Of a stretch of DNA of 64,000 nt, positions 1-15,048 are shown one piece after another. A program made the translations under genes and the position numbers. The DNA lies in contig JAAILG010000172.1 in NCBI GenBank assembly GCA_012026655.1, positions 62,001 through 126,000 on the forward strand, in the 5' to 3' direction. The DNA is from Hydrolagus affinis. Taxonomy: Eukaryota. Each line of letters opens with the position of its first letter. The stretch's first letter is position 1. A model generated the notes under the pieces. It was given only the letters and a program-made list of their open reading frames with translations. It did not search any database and was not told where the DNA came from.

Positions 1-2939
1 GATTTTACAGTAAAGCTCCAAACTTTCCAACTCAAAAAATTAAAAACAAATCACTTTCTCTGCTGGCTTTCATCAATCCCAGTTCAGATATTGTAAGCAA
101 ATTGCCATTGTACATTCAATGCAGTATATATATCCTGCGATAAAACTATTCATCTTACTGGGACCTTGTGAGTGGAGATAGATGAACTCCTGAAATAACA
201 CGTTAGATGGTACCTGATCATTTGGATTTTACTTCACATTACCCTTTTTGGGGTGAAACACATATTTTAGATAGATCTTTAAATGTAATAGAAATGATCA
301 TAACTCTATACAAAGCACACCATTCAAACTTATGTATTCATCCATAGTTATGTAAATGACTACCTCACAAAATGTTACTGTAATTAAATTTGGTTTGAGA
401 ACGCTTCTAAACAAGAAAAATGCTGTTTTCGCTAAATAGAAAATATGTTCGCAGATTATGGGCAAATTATTTCACCTGTTTCTAAATTGTTTCTTCTCCC
501 AAATAATTCTTCAGTCTAAAAATTGAATTTTGCTGGTGATTGAGAGGTTTGAGACCTTGCAGTGAAGTATGTTCGAGTATTTATCAGGTTCAGTCAATTT
601 ATGATGTGGATTTTGACTTCAATTATGTAAATGACATGGCTGGCAGTAAAATACAGTGACCAACAGCCTTGCCTGCTCCAAAAAATGTCACTAATTTAAC
701 TAACTAGTTGTGTCAAAGTACAGTCAGTATAACATAGCAAAAGACACACAATTTTGTATAAATGTAAAGGTCTGTCAGAATGATGAACAAAATCTGCATA
801 GAAAGGCTTGTTTTACAACACTGCAAGCTCTGAAACTTGGGATTGAGTTCACATGCCAAATTTCATTTTCAGCACAGATTCTAGAACCAGCAATCACAGT
901 GAAATGCTATTTTGACAAATATTGCATTGAACAGTTCAATTGGAATAAGTATGAATACTGAACTAACAATGGGCAGAAGGAAGTGACTAACAGTGAAGGG
1001 ATATATACTTCACAACCTCAGCAACCTCAGCAAAACACGTGCCATCTTTTTAAATTGTTCTTAGACCAAATGTGTTCAAAAAATCTTTCAGACATTTCCA
1101 CAGCTCATTGAATGATGTTAGTGAAGGGCTGACATGAAGCTCTTCACTCACATCAAAATACATGGCTGTCCAGTCGTGTGCCCTGCAAAACAGAAATGGA
1201 TCGAGACTCATTCTTGGTGTTTCAGCTCCCCAAAAAACGAAGCTATTAGGAACCAAAACATGTTCTGTAATGATACATTCAATCTATTTTTAAATTTAGG
1301 ATGAATGCTTCAGGAAGTTTAAAACCAACGCATCAGCTTCAATGACAGGAATAGTTTGTTCTCTTCAAATCCAGTCTGCTTTTTAACACTAATACAAGAG
1401 AAGGCTAACCAAAATGGCATCTTAGAAACATAACTGTAACTTAAGGTCATTACAGTACATGGCTACTGCACAAATTGAAACAAGAAGAACTCACAATCTT
1501 CTTGAGTGGCTGAGGCAAACCGGCACTGATTTTAAACCTGGGTCATTAGCAAGGAAATCTTTTCACCTTCACCGGGAAAGAGATTTCCATTGAAATAGGC
1601 TGTTTAGTTGAGCAAAGCTCCCAATTGATAACTTTGAATCACTGTAATAAGTTAATATCCTGCCAAAGGGCAGAACTGGCAATTGCCACATGTAAGGAGT
1701 TGTGTGACACAATTGGGACTTGCTCCCGACGTGAAAGGCGCTATACAAAGGTAATTTTGTTGTTGTTGTATTCACGAAGATCTTACCCAAGAAAACTAAC
1801 CTTAACACTGTCCTCATTTTTTCCCAATTGAAATGTGTTGATTTCTTTCTCGATATATTTGAAGTGTTTGTTCAATCTGGTTATGAGTTAGAAAAGCTTG
1901 CTAGTTCAGAGTTAGTCGGATTAGACTCTGAATTGTGCACAGCAGCTGAGCTCTAAACTAAGAATTTGTTTCTAACATTGTTTCATAGAAGAAAGAGTAG
2001 GTGTTAAAAACACCATAACACTGTTGAATCTACTGTCTGATACATTTGGTTTTGTCAATATTTCAAAACATTTAAAGCTGCAAAAGCAAGATAGGATTTA
2101 AAAATAAAAATAAAGTACTCCCCAAATATTTGGAACCTGAAATGTGAACATTTGTGCTTGCAATTCTACTGCAGTATGAGCACTGCAAGTGCATTGGGAT
2201 CAGAAAATCAACTCAGGCTGTGCTTCAGTCAGCTCTTAACCCTCTTAACTCCTGCCACTCCCACCCCCGCCAACCCATAGGCCAAGTATGTGCGTGCATA
2301 AAATTGCATCACAAGCCGATGAGACCAGATTGAAACACTAATGCTCACATTTAATTATTCTAAGTGAAAAAAAATCTCTACAATAAGGAGAGTTTTAGAT
2401 TTCTTTACCCTCTTAAGAGTTCTCCGGGTTAGTTTGGAGACTGCTTGGGCAGACAGATAAGGTGAAAATGACACATTCGTAGAAGCAGATAAGAAAGAGC
2501 AAATAAGAAATAAACAGCAGCAACATATTCCCTTCTTACAATCTAAGTTAAGGGGAATCTACATCCTGGAGGCGAGAGGCCTGAAGGTGATTAGGATTGT
2601 ATTGTTTTTGAACGGTTAAACCTAGAATCAAGGAGATTAATGGTATAATAAGATTCAGCAAATCTCAGCAACGGTAGTGTTGGTTCCTCCGCTGAAGCTA
2701 AAACTGCTGATCCATACTGTTGGGCCCATATATTGCGCAACACCATTCATATTGATTTTGGAGAGGAATATATAAAATTGTTGGAGAATTTAAGTTACAT
2801 GGGATTTTAAGAGCACTCTTAAGACATGCCCAATCAATTATTTAATCAAATACTTTAAACCTCTGCAATATTAGTATTTGTAGCCTGTTGAATTTGATGC
2901 TTGGTGTTCACTAAGCTTCCCATTTTGTTATAAACTTGT

Positions 2940-3155
2940 TCAAATCAGTCTCTCCATTGGAGGAGGCTGCACCATGTTCCACATCTCCACACGTGACCCC
3001 TCCTTCTCCTGTCGGCTGGGGCTGTAGGTCCCCTGTGTTGCTCTCTTATTCAAGGCCACAATGAAGGCTGCGAGAACTAGAAGCAGAATCAGCAACAGAG
3101 TCACGGTCACCAACCCAATGTACAGAAGAACTTCTGAGGTCCAAACGTCCAGGTC
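2940..3155 (-). CDS. CRB1: CRB1 canonical last exon (exon 12): TM helix plus cytoplasmic tail
   Basis: Not in the ORF track. Acceptor ctgtacaacag|, phase 0. Translates [71 protein letters not shown], the CRB1-type tail with FERM-binding GTY and PDZ-binding ERLI motifs. Confidence 0.97.
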
Positions 3156-3389
3156 CTGTTGTACAGAGTCAAAACAGTTAAAGAAAAGTTTAACCCACAG
3201 AGGGTTAGCTTTGAAGCTGCCATGCTACGAAAAACACATTCAATTCTGAAGCCTCACAATAATTGCAATTCCTCCTAGGTTGTTTGATAATACAGTACAA
3301 TACAGGGAATACCTGGGACTTGCCGGATTTTTTAAAATATTCTTCCCAACATAAACACAACTCTTACACAGCACAGGTGCCTGAATGTA

Positions 3390-3611
3390 TCAGATCAGCC
3401 GCTCCTCTGGTGGCAATTTGAGAGTACTGTTCATTTCCATCCGCGATCCAGTGTGTTCCTGATTGCTCGGGCTGTACGTTCCTTCAGTCTGACGCTTGTC
3501 ACGCAGTTTTAAAATCAGAACAAACAGAATGATAGCCAGGACTATCACTCCTGCAATGACGCACGGGACCACAATAGCTGCTATGTTTACTTTATAAGGT
3601 GCTGGATTTGT
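3390..3611 (-). CDS. Second Crumbs TM/tail exon, CRB3-like (coding exon 3 of the nested CRB3-like gene)
   Basis: Acceptor attattttcacag|, phase 0. Translates [73 protein letters not shown]. [12 protein letters not shown] and [10 protein letters not shown] are CRB3-type signatures. Confidence 0.92.
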
Positions 3612-4749
3612 CTGTGAAAATAATTTTAGATTTTTATTAGAAATTCTCACAAAAATGGGACCAGGATCAATCTAGGCAGTCCCATCCTCACCATATTTTT
3701 TGTTAAGAATTGGAATGGCTCTGAGCTCTACATCATCCCCATTATGAGCAAACTGCACTTACACTATTTTTTGAAGCTTTATTAAAACATAAGTAGAACT
3801 TCTCTAAAGGAAAATAGAATTTATGTCCTTGTTTTGTTTCACCTTTGTGATGTAACTTGGCTCTCGAGTTGTCAATGTTGATTCCTGATCTGAAGTCAAG
3901 TGATCCTAGGCAGAATGGAAGTAGGGGCATAATTGCCCACATAACCCCCTGGTTAGGAAGCATTACGACTTCTGATTGCTACTTGTTGAGATGCCCATTA
4001 CACAGGGCAAGCGCAGAGATGTTGGCTGAGCTCAGGGTCGGGCAATGGATAGTTTCCAGTGGCTGTGGAAGCTTACCCAGTACCCAAAGGAGAGGGTGAA
4101 ATAAATGAAAAGATCCAGTGTAATAATTCTTTACTTTAAGATGGCTGAAGGTGAGATAGCTAAAGTCCAATGAGAATTGAGGCTGTAATTTAAAGTTAGG
4201 TCCCCAGCAAGGGAATCCACAATCACTGAATAGAATTAATGGATAACTCTAAGTTTGTCCTTGTATCCTACCAATTCGACTACCTTATTTATGCACAAGT
4301 TACTTGACCTTGCAGATTTATGAAGTGTTCGATTGCAAAAAAAAGTTCTAGAATAAAGCTATATTTTAAGCATGAAGTTCATTATTATTTAATATATTTT
4401 TAATTCAAAACATGTTTTTTAAAATCATGGCCTTCCTTCATGGGAAACATTTACTCAACAAAAGCACAAAAGATAGAAAGGTATTTTAAATGCAGTCAGT
4501 TTCTTGCAAGGTTACTTGTAGCCAGATGCATTCCTGGGACTAATTTCTCAATAGCTGTAGCACTGATCACTGTATCAATCTAACACTGTCCAATTAATGG
4601 CATTTGAAAGATTAAATGAAGTTTCAAAGGTAAGCCTACCTAGACATAGAGAACCAGTTTTATTGACCCCTTCATGTATTACAGCATGAAAGCTGAGTCC
4701 AATTCAAAACATAGATTAGAATGCTGTCAAGTTAAATCTATCAACTTAC

Positions 4750-4802
4750 AGATGTGGTATTATCAGCAATTGTTGATTGTGAAGGATCTGTTACATTCGA
4801 CA
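4750..4802 (-). CDS. Short ectodomain exon (coding exon 2) of the nested CRB3-like gene
   Basis: ggttcctttgcag|TG TCG AAT...ACA TCT|gtaagt; 53 nt, phase 1 to phase 0. Encodes (V)SNVTDPSQSTIADNTTS, S/T-rich with two N-glycosylation sequons. Bridges the 7861 donor and the 3611 acceptor in frame. Confidence 0.82.
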
Positions 4803-6754
4803 CTGCAAAGGAACCAACACTATCATAAAGATGTTACTGAATTGATGCAAATTTGTAATTTCAAAGTCAAGTCACAACTTTACCAGATAATCAACAAAAA
4901 TTGCAAACACCTGTCTCTTGTTATGAAGGAAGCTGTTAGTGTCCGCTGAGCACTTTTTAAAATATATCCTTTTTAAGGGCAGTTAAGGATTACATGACAG
5001 CAGGTAAGTGCTTTTAAGTCAGGGGAGAATTGCCAGGCCATCTTCATGTGATTCCAGAGCCTCAAGTACAGGAAAATAGCTCTGATCTGTGCCACAAAGT
5101 GACTTTGGGATATCAAGCCTCCTTTTTATGCAAAATGATGAATATAGACGTTTAAGAATGTTAAAAATTCTTAAACCTTAAAAAGGTTAAAACTGAAACC
5201 TTAGAAACTGAAAATGTGCATTTAAATTATGCATCACTTGCATGCAATATAGCTGGAAAAAATATGGCTATTCACAAAAGGTTTCTTAACTAGACAATGC
5301 TCTTTCAAACTAGATATTGCTCCTTTGACAAGTTACAAGCTATCCATTCTCTAGACTGCCTGCTCTCATTATTCAACAACAGGTACTACATGTTGAGCAC
5401 TGTTCTTCTAATGTGGTTCAGACAATAAAGATTAAGAACTATTGTTAGTGGTATTGTTTAGAGGGATTCAACAGATTGTGGCAAGGGCAAGTTGTGTTTT
5501 CAGATATACTTTAAAGAAATTTAAAGAAAGCCCAGACCTCTCTCTTTGGAGGCCCTAGTAGGGATCTAAGCCAGACTCAAGAGCTGTGACTGCACATTCC
5601 CACCAATTCACTGGTTGACCCAGTTTCTCTGGTATGGATTGATGCAACAGGCTGATTACCATGACATTCCCTGAATCCGAGTAAATGTGGAGCCTGGCAG
5701 ACTGCCCATTACAGGGTGTGCTGCCATTATACTTAAAGCTGAAACTAAAATTATACCTGTAAATCTCACTGGCTGAAAATGTTGTGTCTGTTACATATAT
5801 TTACACTTTGCAGTATATTCTGGGAAGCACTTTGAGATGTCTCAATGATGTGATAAGTCGCTATATCATATGCAAGGATGATTATTGTTATCAAACGTTG
5901 TATGGTTTAACATGTTATAATATATTAACATGGTATAATATTTTATACATGGTATAGCACAAATTTTCTAATGTAACTAATTTTCTAAGGCAGCCATTTT
6001 TAACTGATGTCTAAGATAAAAGAAAATTGACAATTACAGACATTAATATTCTTTTGACTGAAAAAATCTCTCTGAGCTCCTTCTTCATTGTTTTCGCTTT
6101 ATAATACTTACAGTTAACCTACCATCTTGGCCTGGCTGTTTATTGCACTATAGTTTTCTTTGAACATTATTTCCCCATTCTTTATATTTAATGTAGCTTG
6201 AAACTGTGAGGCTCAGACTAGGAATGTCTTCTTCCCCATTTACAAGGTTAAATGAGAGCTTGCTGCATGTGATTTGGTGGCAAAATTTTATCAAATTTTA
6301 TGGTCTTTTATGAATTCGAAAAAAGCTTCTGGGACTTGTCACACGACTCACCTTCATTTTGCAAAAGATTAATTAAGTGTTCAGACAGGCTGGTGTTATA
6401 TAGTGGAGATAATGATGCTTTACTCACCATTTGTGCCTACATTACTATATCTCTAAAATCCCATGATGTTGTTTCTCAAATAGAGTCTTTTAATTTATTC
6501 TCACTCTTTGCTTTTTCCTTTCTCAAAAGGTTTGAGGAAATGCTTATATTTTAAACTATAGTTTAATACCCTTTGTTTCAATGCTGCATTGGAGGGTACA
6601 CTTTAAGTTTAGATGAGAAGTTATGTATCTGTCTGATTGACGCCTGTTGTTGATGTACTATATTCAGTCACAATATCTTTATCATGTGGCAAACGGTTCA
6701 AACAAAATTCTGCTGATCTATCTTGGTACGGATACAATCACAATTCTAGGTGTC

Positions 6755-6990
6755 AGCCTGGCTCAGTTGGTAGGACACTCCCCTCTGTGGAGTCAGAAAG
6801 CTGTGTTTCAAATCCAATCAAATGCAAGGATTATTATATTGGGGAATTGAAATCACAGCTGACACTTAAGTGCAGCGATGGGGAACACCACATTGACTTC
6901 AGATACAACGTGATACCAAGGTCCACTCTGTCTGTTCAGGTGGACATGAAAGATCCCATTGCACTATTCAAAAGCGAAAGCGAGTTTTTC
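6755..6990 (+). mobile_element. Old Deu-domain SINE fragment (SacSINE1/AmnSINE-like)
   Basis: tRNA-like head gcctggctcagttggtag followed by ccaaggtcc...tctgttcaggtggacatgaaagatcccattgcactattc, which resembles the Deu core. A similar copy lies at 34010-34295. Confidence 0.65.
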
Positions 6991-7860
6991 TCAAAATGTT
7001 TCTGATGTTTGCGAATAGGATTTTTTAAAGGAAACACTACTTGTAATTCTCACGGTGGTTGCTTTAATTTCTTGTTATTTCTAGATTAAGACACTGCGAG
7101 AAATTTCAGCACATCTCCTGATCAACATTATTATTTGTTTTTCAAAAATGAATAGTTTGAGATGCCTGGTGCCTCAGTTATAACCCAATAACCAACTGTC
7201 CTTTCACAAATTACTATCATCTGATTGTCCTGAGCTTCTGAAAACGGTAAGCAATTTACATTATTATAGCACATTTCAAATTGGGTGGATGTCACAAAGC
7301 ATTTCACACAACTTGCTGGTTATTGAAATCTTTGGTGGACGCTTGGGGGTTGGAGGGGGGGTGGGGGGTTGGGAGTCGATAATGGCTATGACTGAAGAGA
7401 GAGGTCTTATTGTGTCTTTTGTGGGCAGGGAGAGAGGGTGAGGCAGAGGGATTCCAGGATGAAGTTCCAGGAAGTAGGGAAGAGAGAAAGTTCCAGTGAC
7501 TGTTTCCTACCTATTAATAGAAATACTAATCTTTTCGATCAATCATTTGGGTTCACATGGTCCTTCACCCAGAACGTATTTAACTATTTAACATTAGAAG
7601 CAGGTATCACCTTGATCCCAACTTCACACAGCATTTTGCTCACACAATTTGTTGCTAATCACAATGTTGCAACAATGAACTATTAGAAATTTAGTGTCAT
7701 TACCCATTCTCTGTGTAAAACATGGCTTTTCTGTTGCTGTAAAAATAGTGCTAATTTGTTTAAAAAATTAACAAAGTCGCTAAGTTTAAACAAAATCTTA
7801 ATGTGTGTACTCTACTTTTACCTTTGTGACATTCTTTATCGTATTCAAAATAAGGTTTAC

Positions 7861-7939
7861 CTGTAGAGATTGAAGAGTCTGCCTTTAACAAAAATATTAA
7901 AAGCGGAAGCCAAACGAGGTTTAAAAGCATTCTTTCCAT
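7861..7939 (-). CDS. Signal-peptide exon (coding exon 1) of the nested CRB3-like gene
   Basis: aatATGG Kozak context; MERMLLNLVWLPLLIFLLKADSSIST + G|gtaaac, phase 1. In-frame upstream ATG at 7954. Candidate exon acceptor cccttttacag at 8072-8073. Confidence 0.8.
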
Positions 7940-8984
7940 ATTAAGCACAACCATTTGAAATACAGTCCCAGGATTTTGGTGATAGTACAGAAGAATTCAG
8001 TCATTGGAAAGACCTTCCACCACCAACAAGCTCGCAATGTAGCACAATGAATGTATCTGTACTTCAGGCTGCTGTAAAAGGGTGATTCATCTTTGTAGTT
8101 CCTACTATACTCGACCTCTTTTCTTTTTCTGCTCGATGAACCTTAGTGCCTTTACTTTGCCATCACTATTCCAGTGAAAAATGTTGAAATTGATCTAAAG
8201 ATGTGCAGTCAGATTCGTTTTAGCATTCACCGGTAACCTCTCTCTGTACATTTTAACGCTAGCAATTTCTGTCGGCCGCCCTTCACATACCTGGCTCTAG
8301 TTTCAGGTTACAGCCACACCTGAACCCTGCAGATAAAATATCCAAGCCTACAGTACAACCTATTGTTAGGTCCCCATTGCTGCCTTCAGCTGGCCTTGGA
8401 AAAATGGACCAAAAAAATCTTCAAAATAAAAAGCTTCTTGAACTCTTTCATAGTACAATACTGACATTAATTTGCGTTTTAAAAAAACACAGCTTTGTAT
8501 GCTGCAATTGAGCTACATATCAAGATTAATCTGCACTGACCTTGACTAAAACACAAACTCACTTTACTCTCCCTTACTGGTTTTGCCCCCTATTTATTTA
8601 TGAAGCAAGAGGTTATATTAAGATGTCTTTGTATTGATCTTGTGGATTCTTTGAATCTCTAGCTTTTCTGTATTCATAAGTACATTTGAACATCTCAAAA
8701 GTATGAGCCTAAAAATATCAGGGCTGGTTATCGATTAATTTAAAGTAAATTGAATGGTTTTGAATCTATGGTTGAGTCAAATTTGGAATGAGGCTTAGGA
8801 GGACTTGTAGAAGGTCATGGGATTCCAGATATCTAATCAATTGAATTCCACTATTCGCTCCCAGTACTTCAGTGAATTGAATTTAAGATCATCATGGACT
8901 GTGTTTCATTGCATGGTGTTGGCCCACTCTACATATGCAATCTCCTCTTGTACTAAATTCCAGCCCATATTATTTGCTCTTTCA

Positions 8985-13420: not shown

Positions 13421-14813
13421 TGTATATGGCACCTCAATATTAAGCACTAGAAGCGCTAGATAATATCTTAGAAAAACTTTTTCCTTTTGGTATTTTTGTT
13501 TTAGGGGCCTGAACTCCATCATTTTACGTTATTTTTCCACGAATAGATTGCTCTTTGCCACAAATCTACAAACCTCCCTAAAAACATGATGTAGTTTCTC
13601 TGCTTTCCGGCTGCTGGAAGTGCAGCTCTGAAACAGGCTTGTGAGTTGTGCATCAAAAGTACTGGTGCCTCCCAGAGCAATGTGCCAGAGTGTCAGAAAA
13701 ACAGCAGTCTGAGGATACAAAGAATGTGAACCCCTGCATCATCTCTCCATGACACTTTGGGTTTTCCGAATGTACGGTACTCTAATTTCCTTCCCTCATT
13801 GCCTTTTTTCCTTTGTTTAATATTTAAAGGTTTCTTTTGGATTAAATGAGTAAACATTCTTAATGTAACTATTCAGATATTTAGTATCAGTGAAATAGAA
13901 ATGAAACATTAGTCTTTTTTTCCCCCTAACTTTTGCTAAGTATTGTACAGACATCAAGGGTCTGTTATCCAGGGCACTTTATTTGAAAAAATCAATGCTC
14001 ACTCTTTGAAAATAAATTAGACTGTATATTAAAAGTCATCAGGAATATTCTAGAAACAAACTGAGCTATTCAGCTGTACTCGTGTATGTTTAAATGTGCA
14101 GTAATATGTTATTGTAACAAGATCCTTAAAATTTTAACCACATTTATAAGTTGAAAGAAATTCTAGGGAATTATTATCCACTTTGGCAGTAAATTAACTT
14201 GTTGGCGTTAGTTTATCCAGGCATTGTAAACTTACAGCACAAAATTCCCAGTGGATGCCCTAGAGCATGTCTTAGAAAAGCTTCTGCCTTTTGGTATTTT
14301 CCATAAATTCCATAAATTTACCAATGAGCAGAAAACAGGCCCAGAGTAACTAAAGCTGCTAAGGAACCAGGGAAACTCATGTTAAAATCATTGATCTCCC
14401 AATTGCTTGAGCACATTGTTCTGGGAAAATGAAACACTGCAAAGTGGTACATTTTATTTTATGCAGATCATAGCCTTTAACCCTTTGAAGACAGCAGGCA
14501 GAAGCCAAACAATTGCTGCCTTGGTTCATTCTTAAAATACCATGGGACAAGTATCATTCTAGCTCCCTGTCAACTCTTTGAATTGAACTGTACCTTGTAA
14601 TATTTAGTTTTAAACATTTACAGAGAAACTAATTTCCCTCAGCTATTCCATGTTTAAAGAGCTGTACATAAAAGTCACTAGTGCTTCCAGAGTTAAACAT
14701 GTTGTACTTGGATGAGTGAATACCCATGAACTAGAAAGGCATAGTGATAGTTGTTCTATAGTTGATAGACAAACTGATTTGTACATTTTTATTGAAATGA
14801 TTATGCCAAAAGT

Positions 14814-14921
14814 TCAGGCCCACTCAACACCTGGCTCATCCATTCGAAGTATGAGAAAGGAGAGAAGCTGAAAAAGATTTTGCCAAAGTAGCAACAAGAT
14901 GAAAAAGGAGAGATCGCTTAC
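14814..14921 (-). CDS. CRB1: Exon 11 read-through (11b): alternative hydrophobic C-terminus of a CRB1-B-type isoform
   Basis: The frame stays open past the donor: VSDLSFFILLLLWQNLFQLLSFLILRMDEPGVEWA*, closely resembling the mammalian CRB1 exon-11b tail (VSSLSFYVSLLFWQNLFQLLSYLILRMNDEPVVEW..., recalled). AATAAA at 14788-14793 (minus). Confidence 0.9.
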   Translation of the reverse strand, partial: VSDLSFFILLLLWQNLFQLLSFLILRMDEPGVEWA

Positions 14922-15048
14922 ATCCATTTCGCATCGGTCACCAACAAAGCTCATGTCGCAGATGCACCGGAACCTGCCGGGCAGGTTCTGACACAGGCCC
15001 CCATTCAGACAAGGGTCCGATTCACATTCATTAGCGTCCATTTCACAC
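14922..15048 (-). CDS. CRB1: CRB1 exon 11 (EGF-like)
   Basis: cccggcag|G TGT GAA...ATG GAT|gtaagc; 127 nt; CEMDANECESDPCLNGGLCQNLPGRFRCICDMSFVGDRCEMD. Confidence 0.96.

Follow-up and report, generated by a model that had tools for sequence, protein, structure and literature searches.

The stretch of Hydrolagus affinis DNA analysed here comprises 64,000 nucleotides (nt) of contig JAAILG010000172.1 (assembly GCA_012026655.1, positions 62,001 to 126,000) and is referred to below as the window. On its minus strand it carries exons of the Crumbs gene CRB1 and, nested in the last intron of that gene in the same orientation, a short three-exon unit with homology to CRB3, which is the subject of this report. 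The host exons, which run from about 40.6 kb to 14.9 kb on the minus strand, encode EGF and Laminin-G (LamG) domains, and it is by these that the host is recognised as a Crumbs gene. Exon 11 (14922..15048, minus strand) encodes the last EGF domain (Pfam EGF, E 6.3e-09) and ends in phase 0, and the last CRB1 exon (2940..3155, minus strand) begins at a phase-0 acceptor and encodes a transmembrane (TM) helix and a CRB1-type tail ending in ERLI. This last exon is 65–71% identical to the CRB1-type parts of teleost gene models (BLASTP), and the same type of tail is found in proteins named crumbs homolog 1 by their source (P0223, P0275 and P0281). An earlier reading of the bare sequence (the original prediction) had placed the short unit on the same strand between the end of exon 11 at 14922 and the last exon at 3155, a position confirmed by the exon mapping and by the EGF and LamG domains.

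Read exon by exon in the window sequence, the short unit consists of three minus-strand exons with canonical splice sites and compatible phases, and these are exactly the GT-AG exons (7939-7861, 4802-4750 and 3611-3390) that had been predicted. Coding exon 1 (7861..7939, minus strand, 79 nt) opens with an ATG at 7939 and encodes a signal-peptide-like hydrophobic stretch, the core of which has a Kyte-Doolittle mean of 2.52 over 15 amino acids (aa), with a charged start before it and a polar end after it; the exon finishes in phase 1 at a GTAAAC donor (GT at 7860-7859). Five codons ahead of the ATG at 7939 there is another in the same frame (7952..7954, minus strand), which is probably not the start used, given that the shark models start at the position equivalent to 7939. 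Coding exon 2 (4750..4802, minus strand, 53 nt), flanked by TTTGCAG on the acceptor side and a GTAAGT donor, encodes ectodomain with two N-x-T sequons and ends in phase 0. Since 79 and 53 bases add up to 132, coding exon 3 (3390..3611, minus strand) starts in phase 0. It is preceded by TTTTCACAG at its acceptor and encodes the end of the ectodomain, a TM helix (Kyte-Doolittle mean 3.36 over 21 aa), a G-T-Y-x-P-S motif and, at the very end, ERLI followed by a TGA stop codon (3392-3390). In all searches described below the three exons were handled separately, with exon 3 (73 aa) alone serving as the main query.

These exons had been taken to spell out the architecture that defines CRB3, i.e. a signal peptide, a tiny ectodomain, a TM helix and a tail that binds FERM and PDZ domains, and the sequence features bear this out for every structural hallmark of the family that was tested. 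An N-terminal signal peptide is predicted both from hydropathy and from the alignment with shark N-termini. Between it and the TM helix lie about 30 ectodomain residues, which are predicted to be glycosylated at the two N-x-T sequons, and exon 3 has no EGF or LamG match in Pfam, consistent with the short N-glycosylated ectodomain of CRB3 proteins, which is free of both domains; the Pfam matches of the two tail exons, that of the unit and that of CRB1, are sub-threshold, of TM type and nothing more. The TM helix and the tail motifs of the CRB3 family are present in exon 3. The cytoplasmic tail is 37–39 residues long, and 14 of its columns, among them those of G, Y, P, S and ERLI, do not vary in a 10-sequence alignment.

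Homology to named CRB3 proteins was established with exon 3 as the query, the E values ranging from 5.7e-37 to 1.7e-12. In a search of 5.8 billion proteins, nine candidates were returned, eight of which matched at E ≤ 0.01: five chondrichthyan proteins named 'crumbs homolog 3(-like)' (118–121 aa) and the tetrapod CRB3 proteins of Microcaecilia (E 3.1e-20), Salvator (E 8.4e-18) and Paroedura (E 1.7e-12). Over all 73 residues, exon 3 is 97% identical to the Callorhinchus milii protein, 84% to that of Mustelus, 82% to Carcharodon, 81% to Narcine and 74% to Mobula (BLASTP). The first of these values suggests a holocephalan near to Callorhinchus as the source of the window. With Paroedura CRB3 as the query, 515 of 552 candidates were relatives at E ≤ 0.01, and most of those with a source name among the 120 matches listed are called CRB3; the neighbours found in an Atlas search were CRB3-like, too.

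Conservation extends to the two small exons. Four elasmobranch models (118 aa) align across all three exons, as exemplified by the shark protein P0003, which tblastn against the whole window places at 7936-7865 (aa 3-26), 4797-4744 (aa 30-47) and 3611-3393 (aa 46-118). By the same method, P0001 to P0004 have matches on exon 2, and the best window alignment of the N-terminus of the Carcharodon model is exon 1 (46% over 24 aa, E 0.058). Small exons that are unconserved in related species, the outcome named beforehand as fatal to the original prediction, were thus not what we found: all three exons are kept in the shark and ray models, which together with the homology rules out a chance open reading frame (ORF) or a pseudogene. 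The gene itself is an ordinary one and already part of public annotation, as it appears in RefSeq and UniRef under the name 'crumbs homolog 3(-like)' for five chondrichthyans; these predictions, along with related teleost models, two of which are named 'Crumbs homolog 3b', mean that the unit is not an unknown one.

The nested unit is accompanied by a second CRB3-type gene in cartilaginous fishes. A profile search of 1.84 billion representatives yielded 415 proteins at E ≤ 0.001. Among the 150 listed are P0131, recorded as 'protein crumbs homolog 3a [Callorhinchus milii]' (87 aa), and P0128, recorded as 'crumbs homolog 3-like [Mustelus asterias]' (106 aa), each of them 59% identical to exon 3 (BLASTP). 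In Mustelus, P0128 is encoded on a 168,903-bp contig and the nested-type protein on a different contig of 140.5 Mb. Because Callorhinchus and Mustelus carry this second, different CRB3-type protein, the nested unit is an extra paralogue; this is what had been proposed when it was called a retained extra CRB3 paralogue, and these two relatives do have a separate CRB3-type gene, of the kind that was to be looked for in this genome. Two further proteins, P0180 (Callorhinchus milii A0A4W3IZN9, 99 aa) and P0143 (a Logan ORF), have a CRB1-like tail that is unlike the CRB1 tail of the window, and cartilaginous fishes may, on this evidence, hold a further CRB1-like Crumbs paralogue.

Outside the cartilaginous fishes, a related short unit is present in the gene models of 13 named teleosts, fused there to a CRB1-type terminal exon. 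The models of Megalops, Dissostichus, Ilyodon, Pleuronectes, Crenichthys and Channa run on into a protein with two TM helices, as do the partial models of Albula and Anguilla, and those of Periophthalmus, Poecilia latipinna, Sander, Astatotilapia and Poecilia mexicana are short and have a CRB1-type C-terminus. In one search for such models, 15 of the 29 matches were examined as sequences, and four of these (P0280, P0281, P0286 and P0289) consist of the CRB1 last exon only. Like the unit in the window, the teleost unit has a signal peptide, a small stub with predicted N-glycosylation, a TM helix with the pattern A-A-x-x-x-P-C, a juxtamembrane region that starts with K-L-R (K-L-R-x-[KR]-R-Q-T-E-G) and a same-strand CRB1 terminal exon as its neighbour; its tail exon begins at the same point as exon 3, and the pattern A-P...V.AA..PC is common to both. 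It differs in that its own tail has diverged, with G-T-Y changed to G-G-F or G-S-L, and in that its models borrow the CRB1 C-terminus at varying junctions. In P0283, the one Logan ORF (104 aa) in which the teleost-type unit stands alone, this tail ends in E-R-L-V, and the fused models appear to take the GT of such a final Val codon as a splice donor. Since the junctions vary and a topology with two TM helices is implausible, we take the fused products to be artefacts of the gene predictors. The models nonetheless show the unit and the CRB1 last exon to be same-strand neighbours and, as they reach that exon but skip all EGF and LamG exons, we infer that the teleost unit, too, lies inside CRB1. 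The linkage is therefore probably older than the split between cartilaginous and bony fishes. Among the relatives retrieved, no tetrapod member of the nested-type lineage was seen.

The relationships between the various tails were addressed with a tree of the TM-plus-tail regions (49 rows, 72 columns; IQ-TREE, with two support values per branch). The chondrichthyan nested units and the teleost units form a clade (90/90) whose sister clade (87/83) holds all other short forms. Within this sister clade, Callorhinchus crb3a, the Mustelus 3a-type protein, hagfish CRB3 and one further relative group together (94/81), as do all CRB3 and crb3a proteins of bony vertebrates (82/85). The short forms as a whole (91/87) are sister to the CRB2-type tails (98/96), and the CRB1 tails make up a clade of their own (100/100) on a long branch among the long Crumbs proteins of invertebrates. 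A phylogeny of the tail exons against CRB1, CRB2 and CRB3, one of the checks suggested with the original prediction, hence places the nested unit outside the canonical CRB3 clade with moderate support (87/83). A tree in which the teleost units were held together with teleost crb3a was weakly rejected by the approximately unbiased (AU) test (p 0.041). Taken together, the tree favours two ancient lineages of short Crumbs proteins.

We consider it likely, with a probability of roughly 0.7, that the unit is a real and conserved CRB3-family coding unit, which shares its strand with CRB1 and sits in the last CRB1 intron, and an ancient paralogue of canonical CRB3/crb3a; the CRB1-linked arrangement most likely dates to the ancestor of jawed vertebrates, as judged from the teleost models and the tree. 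Transcription would start at a putative internal promoter upstream of 7939, and the three coding exons would give rise to a small type I membrane protein with a cleaved signal peptide, about 30 extracellular residues bearing N-glycan sites, a TM helix and a tail of 37–39 residues that combines the Crumbs FERM-binding motif with a C-terminal ERLI. Via ERLI, the protein would be expected to recruit PDZ proteins of the PALS1/PAR6 type and, by homology, it may act as a determinant of apical polarity and junctions in epithelia. The mRNA itself would continue through the last exon of CRB1, using it as a 3′ untranslated region (3′ UTR), and would end with CRB1.

The proposed 3′ end follows from the spacing of the two tail exons. 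The spacer between them (3156..3389, minus strand) measures 234 nt, and a hexamer scan found neither AATAAA nor ATTAAA in it, which is why the mRNA of the short unit can be expected to run through the CRB1 last exon. The first ATTAAA beyond both stop codons (2841..2846, minus strand) is a candidate for a shared poly(A) signal, and a second one starts at 2355; transcripts of the short unit and of CRB1 thus probably have a common 3′ end. The two tail exons are tandem homologues, each with a phase-0 acceptor and an ERLI end, and their tails are 61% identical over the final 36 aa. Yet their TM regions cannot be aligned, the juxtamembrane sequence is K-R-A-T-Q-G in CRB1 as opposed to K-R-Q-T-E-G in the unit, and the CRB1 tail groups with the long Crumbs proteins of invertebrates, far from all short forms. 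With likeness confined to the last 36 aa and the two so far apart in the tree, exon 3 as a recent copy of the host tail exon was ruled out.

Several observations weigh against the reading of the unit as an ancient, CRB1-linked paralogue that is expressed on its own. The RNA at hand consisted of three single-cell poly(A) runs from another study and a second organism, 27–30% of each of which was read. In these runs, the splice junctions listed included none at the borders of the unit's exons, exon 1 was without reads and the depth on the unit did not exceed 1.68 (run X3, bin 3513-3683); moreover, depth cannot separate a junction from exon 2 to 3611 from one to 3155. The older RefSeq model of C. 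milii, P0001, has another first exon without a signal peptide: its first 19 residues map to 5727-5671, and its exon 2 is extended upstream (4803-4851), where this window has a stop codon. The teleost linkage is read from predicted gene models, the junctions of which vary between species and in some cases yield the implausible protein with two TM helices. The Ensembl label 'Crumbs homolog 3b', borne by two CRB1-linked models (Periophthalmus and Poecilia latipinna), is inconsistent, as it is also given to P0150 of Acanthochromis polyacanthus (83 aa, partial) with a CRB2-type tail. The tree, finally, spans 72 columns only and is moderate evidence; upon removal of the teleost units, support for the clade of all other short forms falls to 79/84, and two constraints were not rejected by the AU test, namely the chondrichthyan nested units with the chondrichthyan 3a-type proteins (p 0.10) and the nested and teleost units with bony-vertebrate CRB3 (p 0.15).

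Some of these points can be qualified. Exon 1 as originally predicted agrees with the elasmobranch models and not with P0001, because the shark N-termini align at 7939-7861. As for the RNA runs, which neither confirm nor refute splicing of the unit, a depth of 0.54 on the exon-2 bin in X3 stems from two reads with one start and the same C at 4780, and X2 has a depth of 0.4–0.78 over 3171-3512, the region of the spacer and exon 3. For the reads on exon 2, exon 3 and the spacer the first mate is always on the plus strand, which fits minus-strand RNA if the library is stranded, and both exon-2 reads align over about 46 letters only, which suggests that they are spliced. Expression and splicing of the unit are thereby hinted at. 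In P0150, a small N-terminus with predicted N-glycosylation is joined into a CRB2-type last exon; this points either to a crb2 locus that also contains a short unit or to an artefact of the model.

The likeliest of the alternatives, although we consider it unlikely, makes the nested unit the orthologue of bony-vertebrate CRB3, with the chondrichthyan crb3a-type proteins (and hagfish CRB3) as the extra lineage and CRB3 having left the CRB1 locus in bony vertebrates. It draws on the AU value of 0.15 for the joint clade and on the greater likeness of exon 3 to amphibian and reptile CRB3 (56–67% identity) as compared with the chondrichthyan crb3a-type proteins (59%; BLASTP). However, much of the likeness to tetrapod CRB3 lies at positions common to CRB1, CRB2 and invertebrate Crumbs tails and may simply be ancestral. 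In addition, teleosts carry both the CRB1-linked unit and crb3a, and the best tree joins the former to the nested units (90/90) and the latter to tetrapod CRB3. With regard to orthology with tetrapod CRB3, the unit has a position inside CRB1 and a place outside the canonical clade in the best tree (87/83), and a joint clade with bony-vertebrate CRB3 stands in the AU test (p 0.15).

Less probable still is a CRB3 copy that reached the CRB1 intron through DNA-level duplication in the cartilaginous lineage alone, with teleost units that are either independent or artefacts of gene models. An AU value of 0.10 for a clade of chondrichthyan nested and crb3a-type proteins would suit such an insertion, and so would teleost evidence drawn from gene predictions that differ in their junctions. 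The insertion is at odds with the same type of unit being joined to the CRB1-type last exon in 13 named teleost species and with a teleost tail exon that starts where exon 3 does and shares its A-P...V.AA..PC pattern, as well as with the tandem arrangement of homologous tail exons 234 nt apart, which suggests duplication in place. The least likely of the alternatives, that exon 3 mainly serves as an alternative terminal exon of long CRB1 and/or that exons 1 and 2 splice to the CRB1 last exon, with no separate short protein, is permitted by the phases (exon 11 and exon 2 end in phase 0, and the acceptors at 3611 and 3155, with both of which exon 11 is compatible, are phase 0) and echoed by the teleost models that give the short unit a CRB1-type C-terminus, but five RefSeq/UniRef models join exons 2 and 3, four of them, from elasmobranchs, adding an N-terminus like exon 1, no long Crumbs protein with a nested-type tail is present among the 150 representatives listed, and alternative use of the exon would be compatible with a short gene in any case.

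Short Crumbs proteins are known from other settings with which the unit can be compared. Tetrapod CRB3/CRB3A and fish crb3a resemble it in their size of about 110–120 aa, their signal peptide, their tiny glycosylated ectodomain without EGF or LamG domains, their single TM helix and the sequence K-R-Q-T-E-G-T-Y. Canonical CRB3 differs in having a locus of its own, whereas the unit described here lies inside CRB1 and occurs in chondrichthyans alongside a separate crb3a-type gene. Zebrafish crb2b-sf and mammalian CRB1-B are likewise products of an alternative start within a long Crumbs gene (PMC7044448). As described there, crb2b-sf starts in intron 7 and retains EGF and LamG domains, which rules out that the unit is identical to it (PMC7044448). 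Unlike products of the crb2b-sf/CRB1-B type, the unit brings a signal peptide and a tail exon of its own, uses no coding exon of the host and lacks EGF and LamG domains. In the host gene, the frame of exon 11 stays open for about 34 codons past its donor before it meets a TGA near 14817, with an AATAAA further on near 14792 (14788-14921, minus strand); this combination fits a read-through end similar to that of CRB1-B.

CRB3 is the main epithelial Crumbs protein, and to our knowledge the origin of this 120-aa protein from a family of 1,400–2,000-aa members is rarely addressed. A short unit with its own tail exon, located in this window 234 nt upstream of the CRB1 tail exon and kept from chimaeras to teleosts, would provide a concrete and testable model of how CRB3 arose. 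Tentatively, and at somewhat less than even odds, we suggest that the Crumbs locus of vertebrates was already compound before it was duplicated, comprising an internal promoter, a pair of small exons and a tail exon present as a tandem duplicate. Of the two tail exons, an ancestral one of the K-R-A-T type would plausibly have served the long form and a derived one of the K-R-Q-T-E-G type the short form. It is then plausible that both were retained at the CRB1 locus following the genome duplications, the window being a living example and teleosts a diverged one, that the CRB2 locus kept the long form with the derived tail and that the CRB3 locus kept the short unit only. A compound locus would explain why CRB2 tails (98/96), and not CRB1 tails, group with the short forms. 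The conserved CRB1 linkage in the teleost gene models and the tree both fit this model, which is built on an alignment of few columns, on predicted genes and on a presumed DENND1 paralogy, in which each human CRB gene lies beside a DENND1 paralogue.

If the locus was indeed compound, CRB3 would be the remnant of a whole Crumbs ohnologue. The fish crb3 paralogues would likewise read as ancient paralogues and not as products of a teleost duplication. In two publications, zebrafish crb3a and crb3b are treated as duplication products (PMC5676222, PMC10601974); contrary to these, the CRB1-linked teleost unit, possibly crb3b, would be no teleost-specific duplicate of crb3a. For work on CRB1 disease, the point to note is that in some vertebrates an independent coding unit can be present in the last CRB1 intron. 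A full-text search, outside of which subscription papers and supplements fell, found no publication that describes a CRB3-like gene nested in CRB1 or deals with how CRB3 originated. The apparently new points are that the gene is nested in CRB1, that a second CRB3-type gene exists as well and that the CRB1 linkage is likely to extend to teleosts.

The sequence of the locus was also covered by a DNA-like run (X1), which has an even depth of about 50 and from which contigs spanning 3000-5830 and 5839-8100 were obtained, with 20 and 33 differing letters, respectively. Among the 40 differences listed (there are 49 further ones), one falls in the exons of the unit, 4780 T>C, a synonymous change at the third base of a serine codon. 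Compared with the window, X1 also carries 18 additional bases behind 4536 and lacks 7 bases at 6261; the two sites are intronic. The first intron of the unit contains high-copy repeats at 5736-5906, 6591-7103 and 7275-7616, with a summed contig depth of 10^3 to 10^5 in X1. RNA reads from both strands map to these repeats and contain many repeat-to-repeat joints, e.g. 5837>6817.

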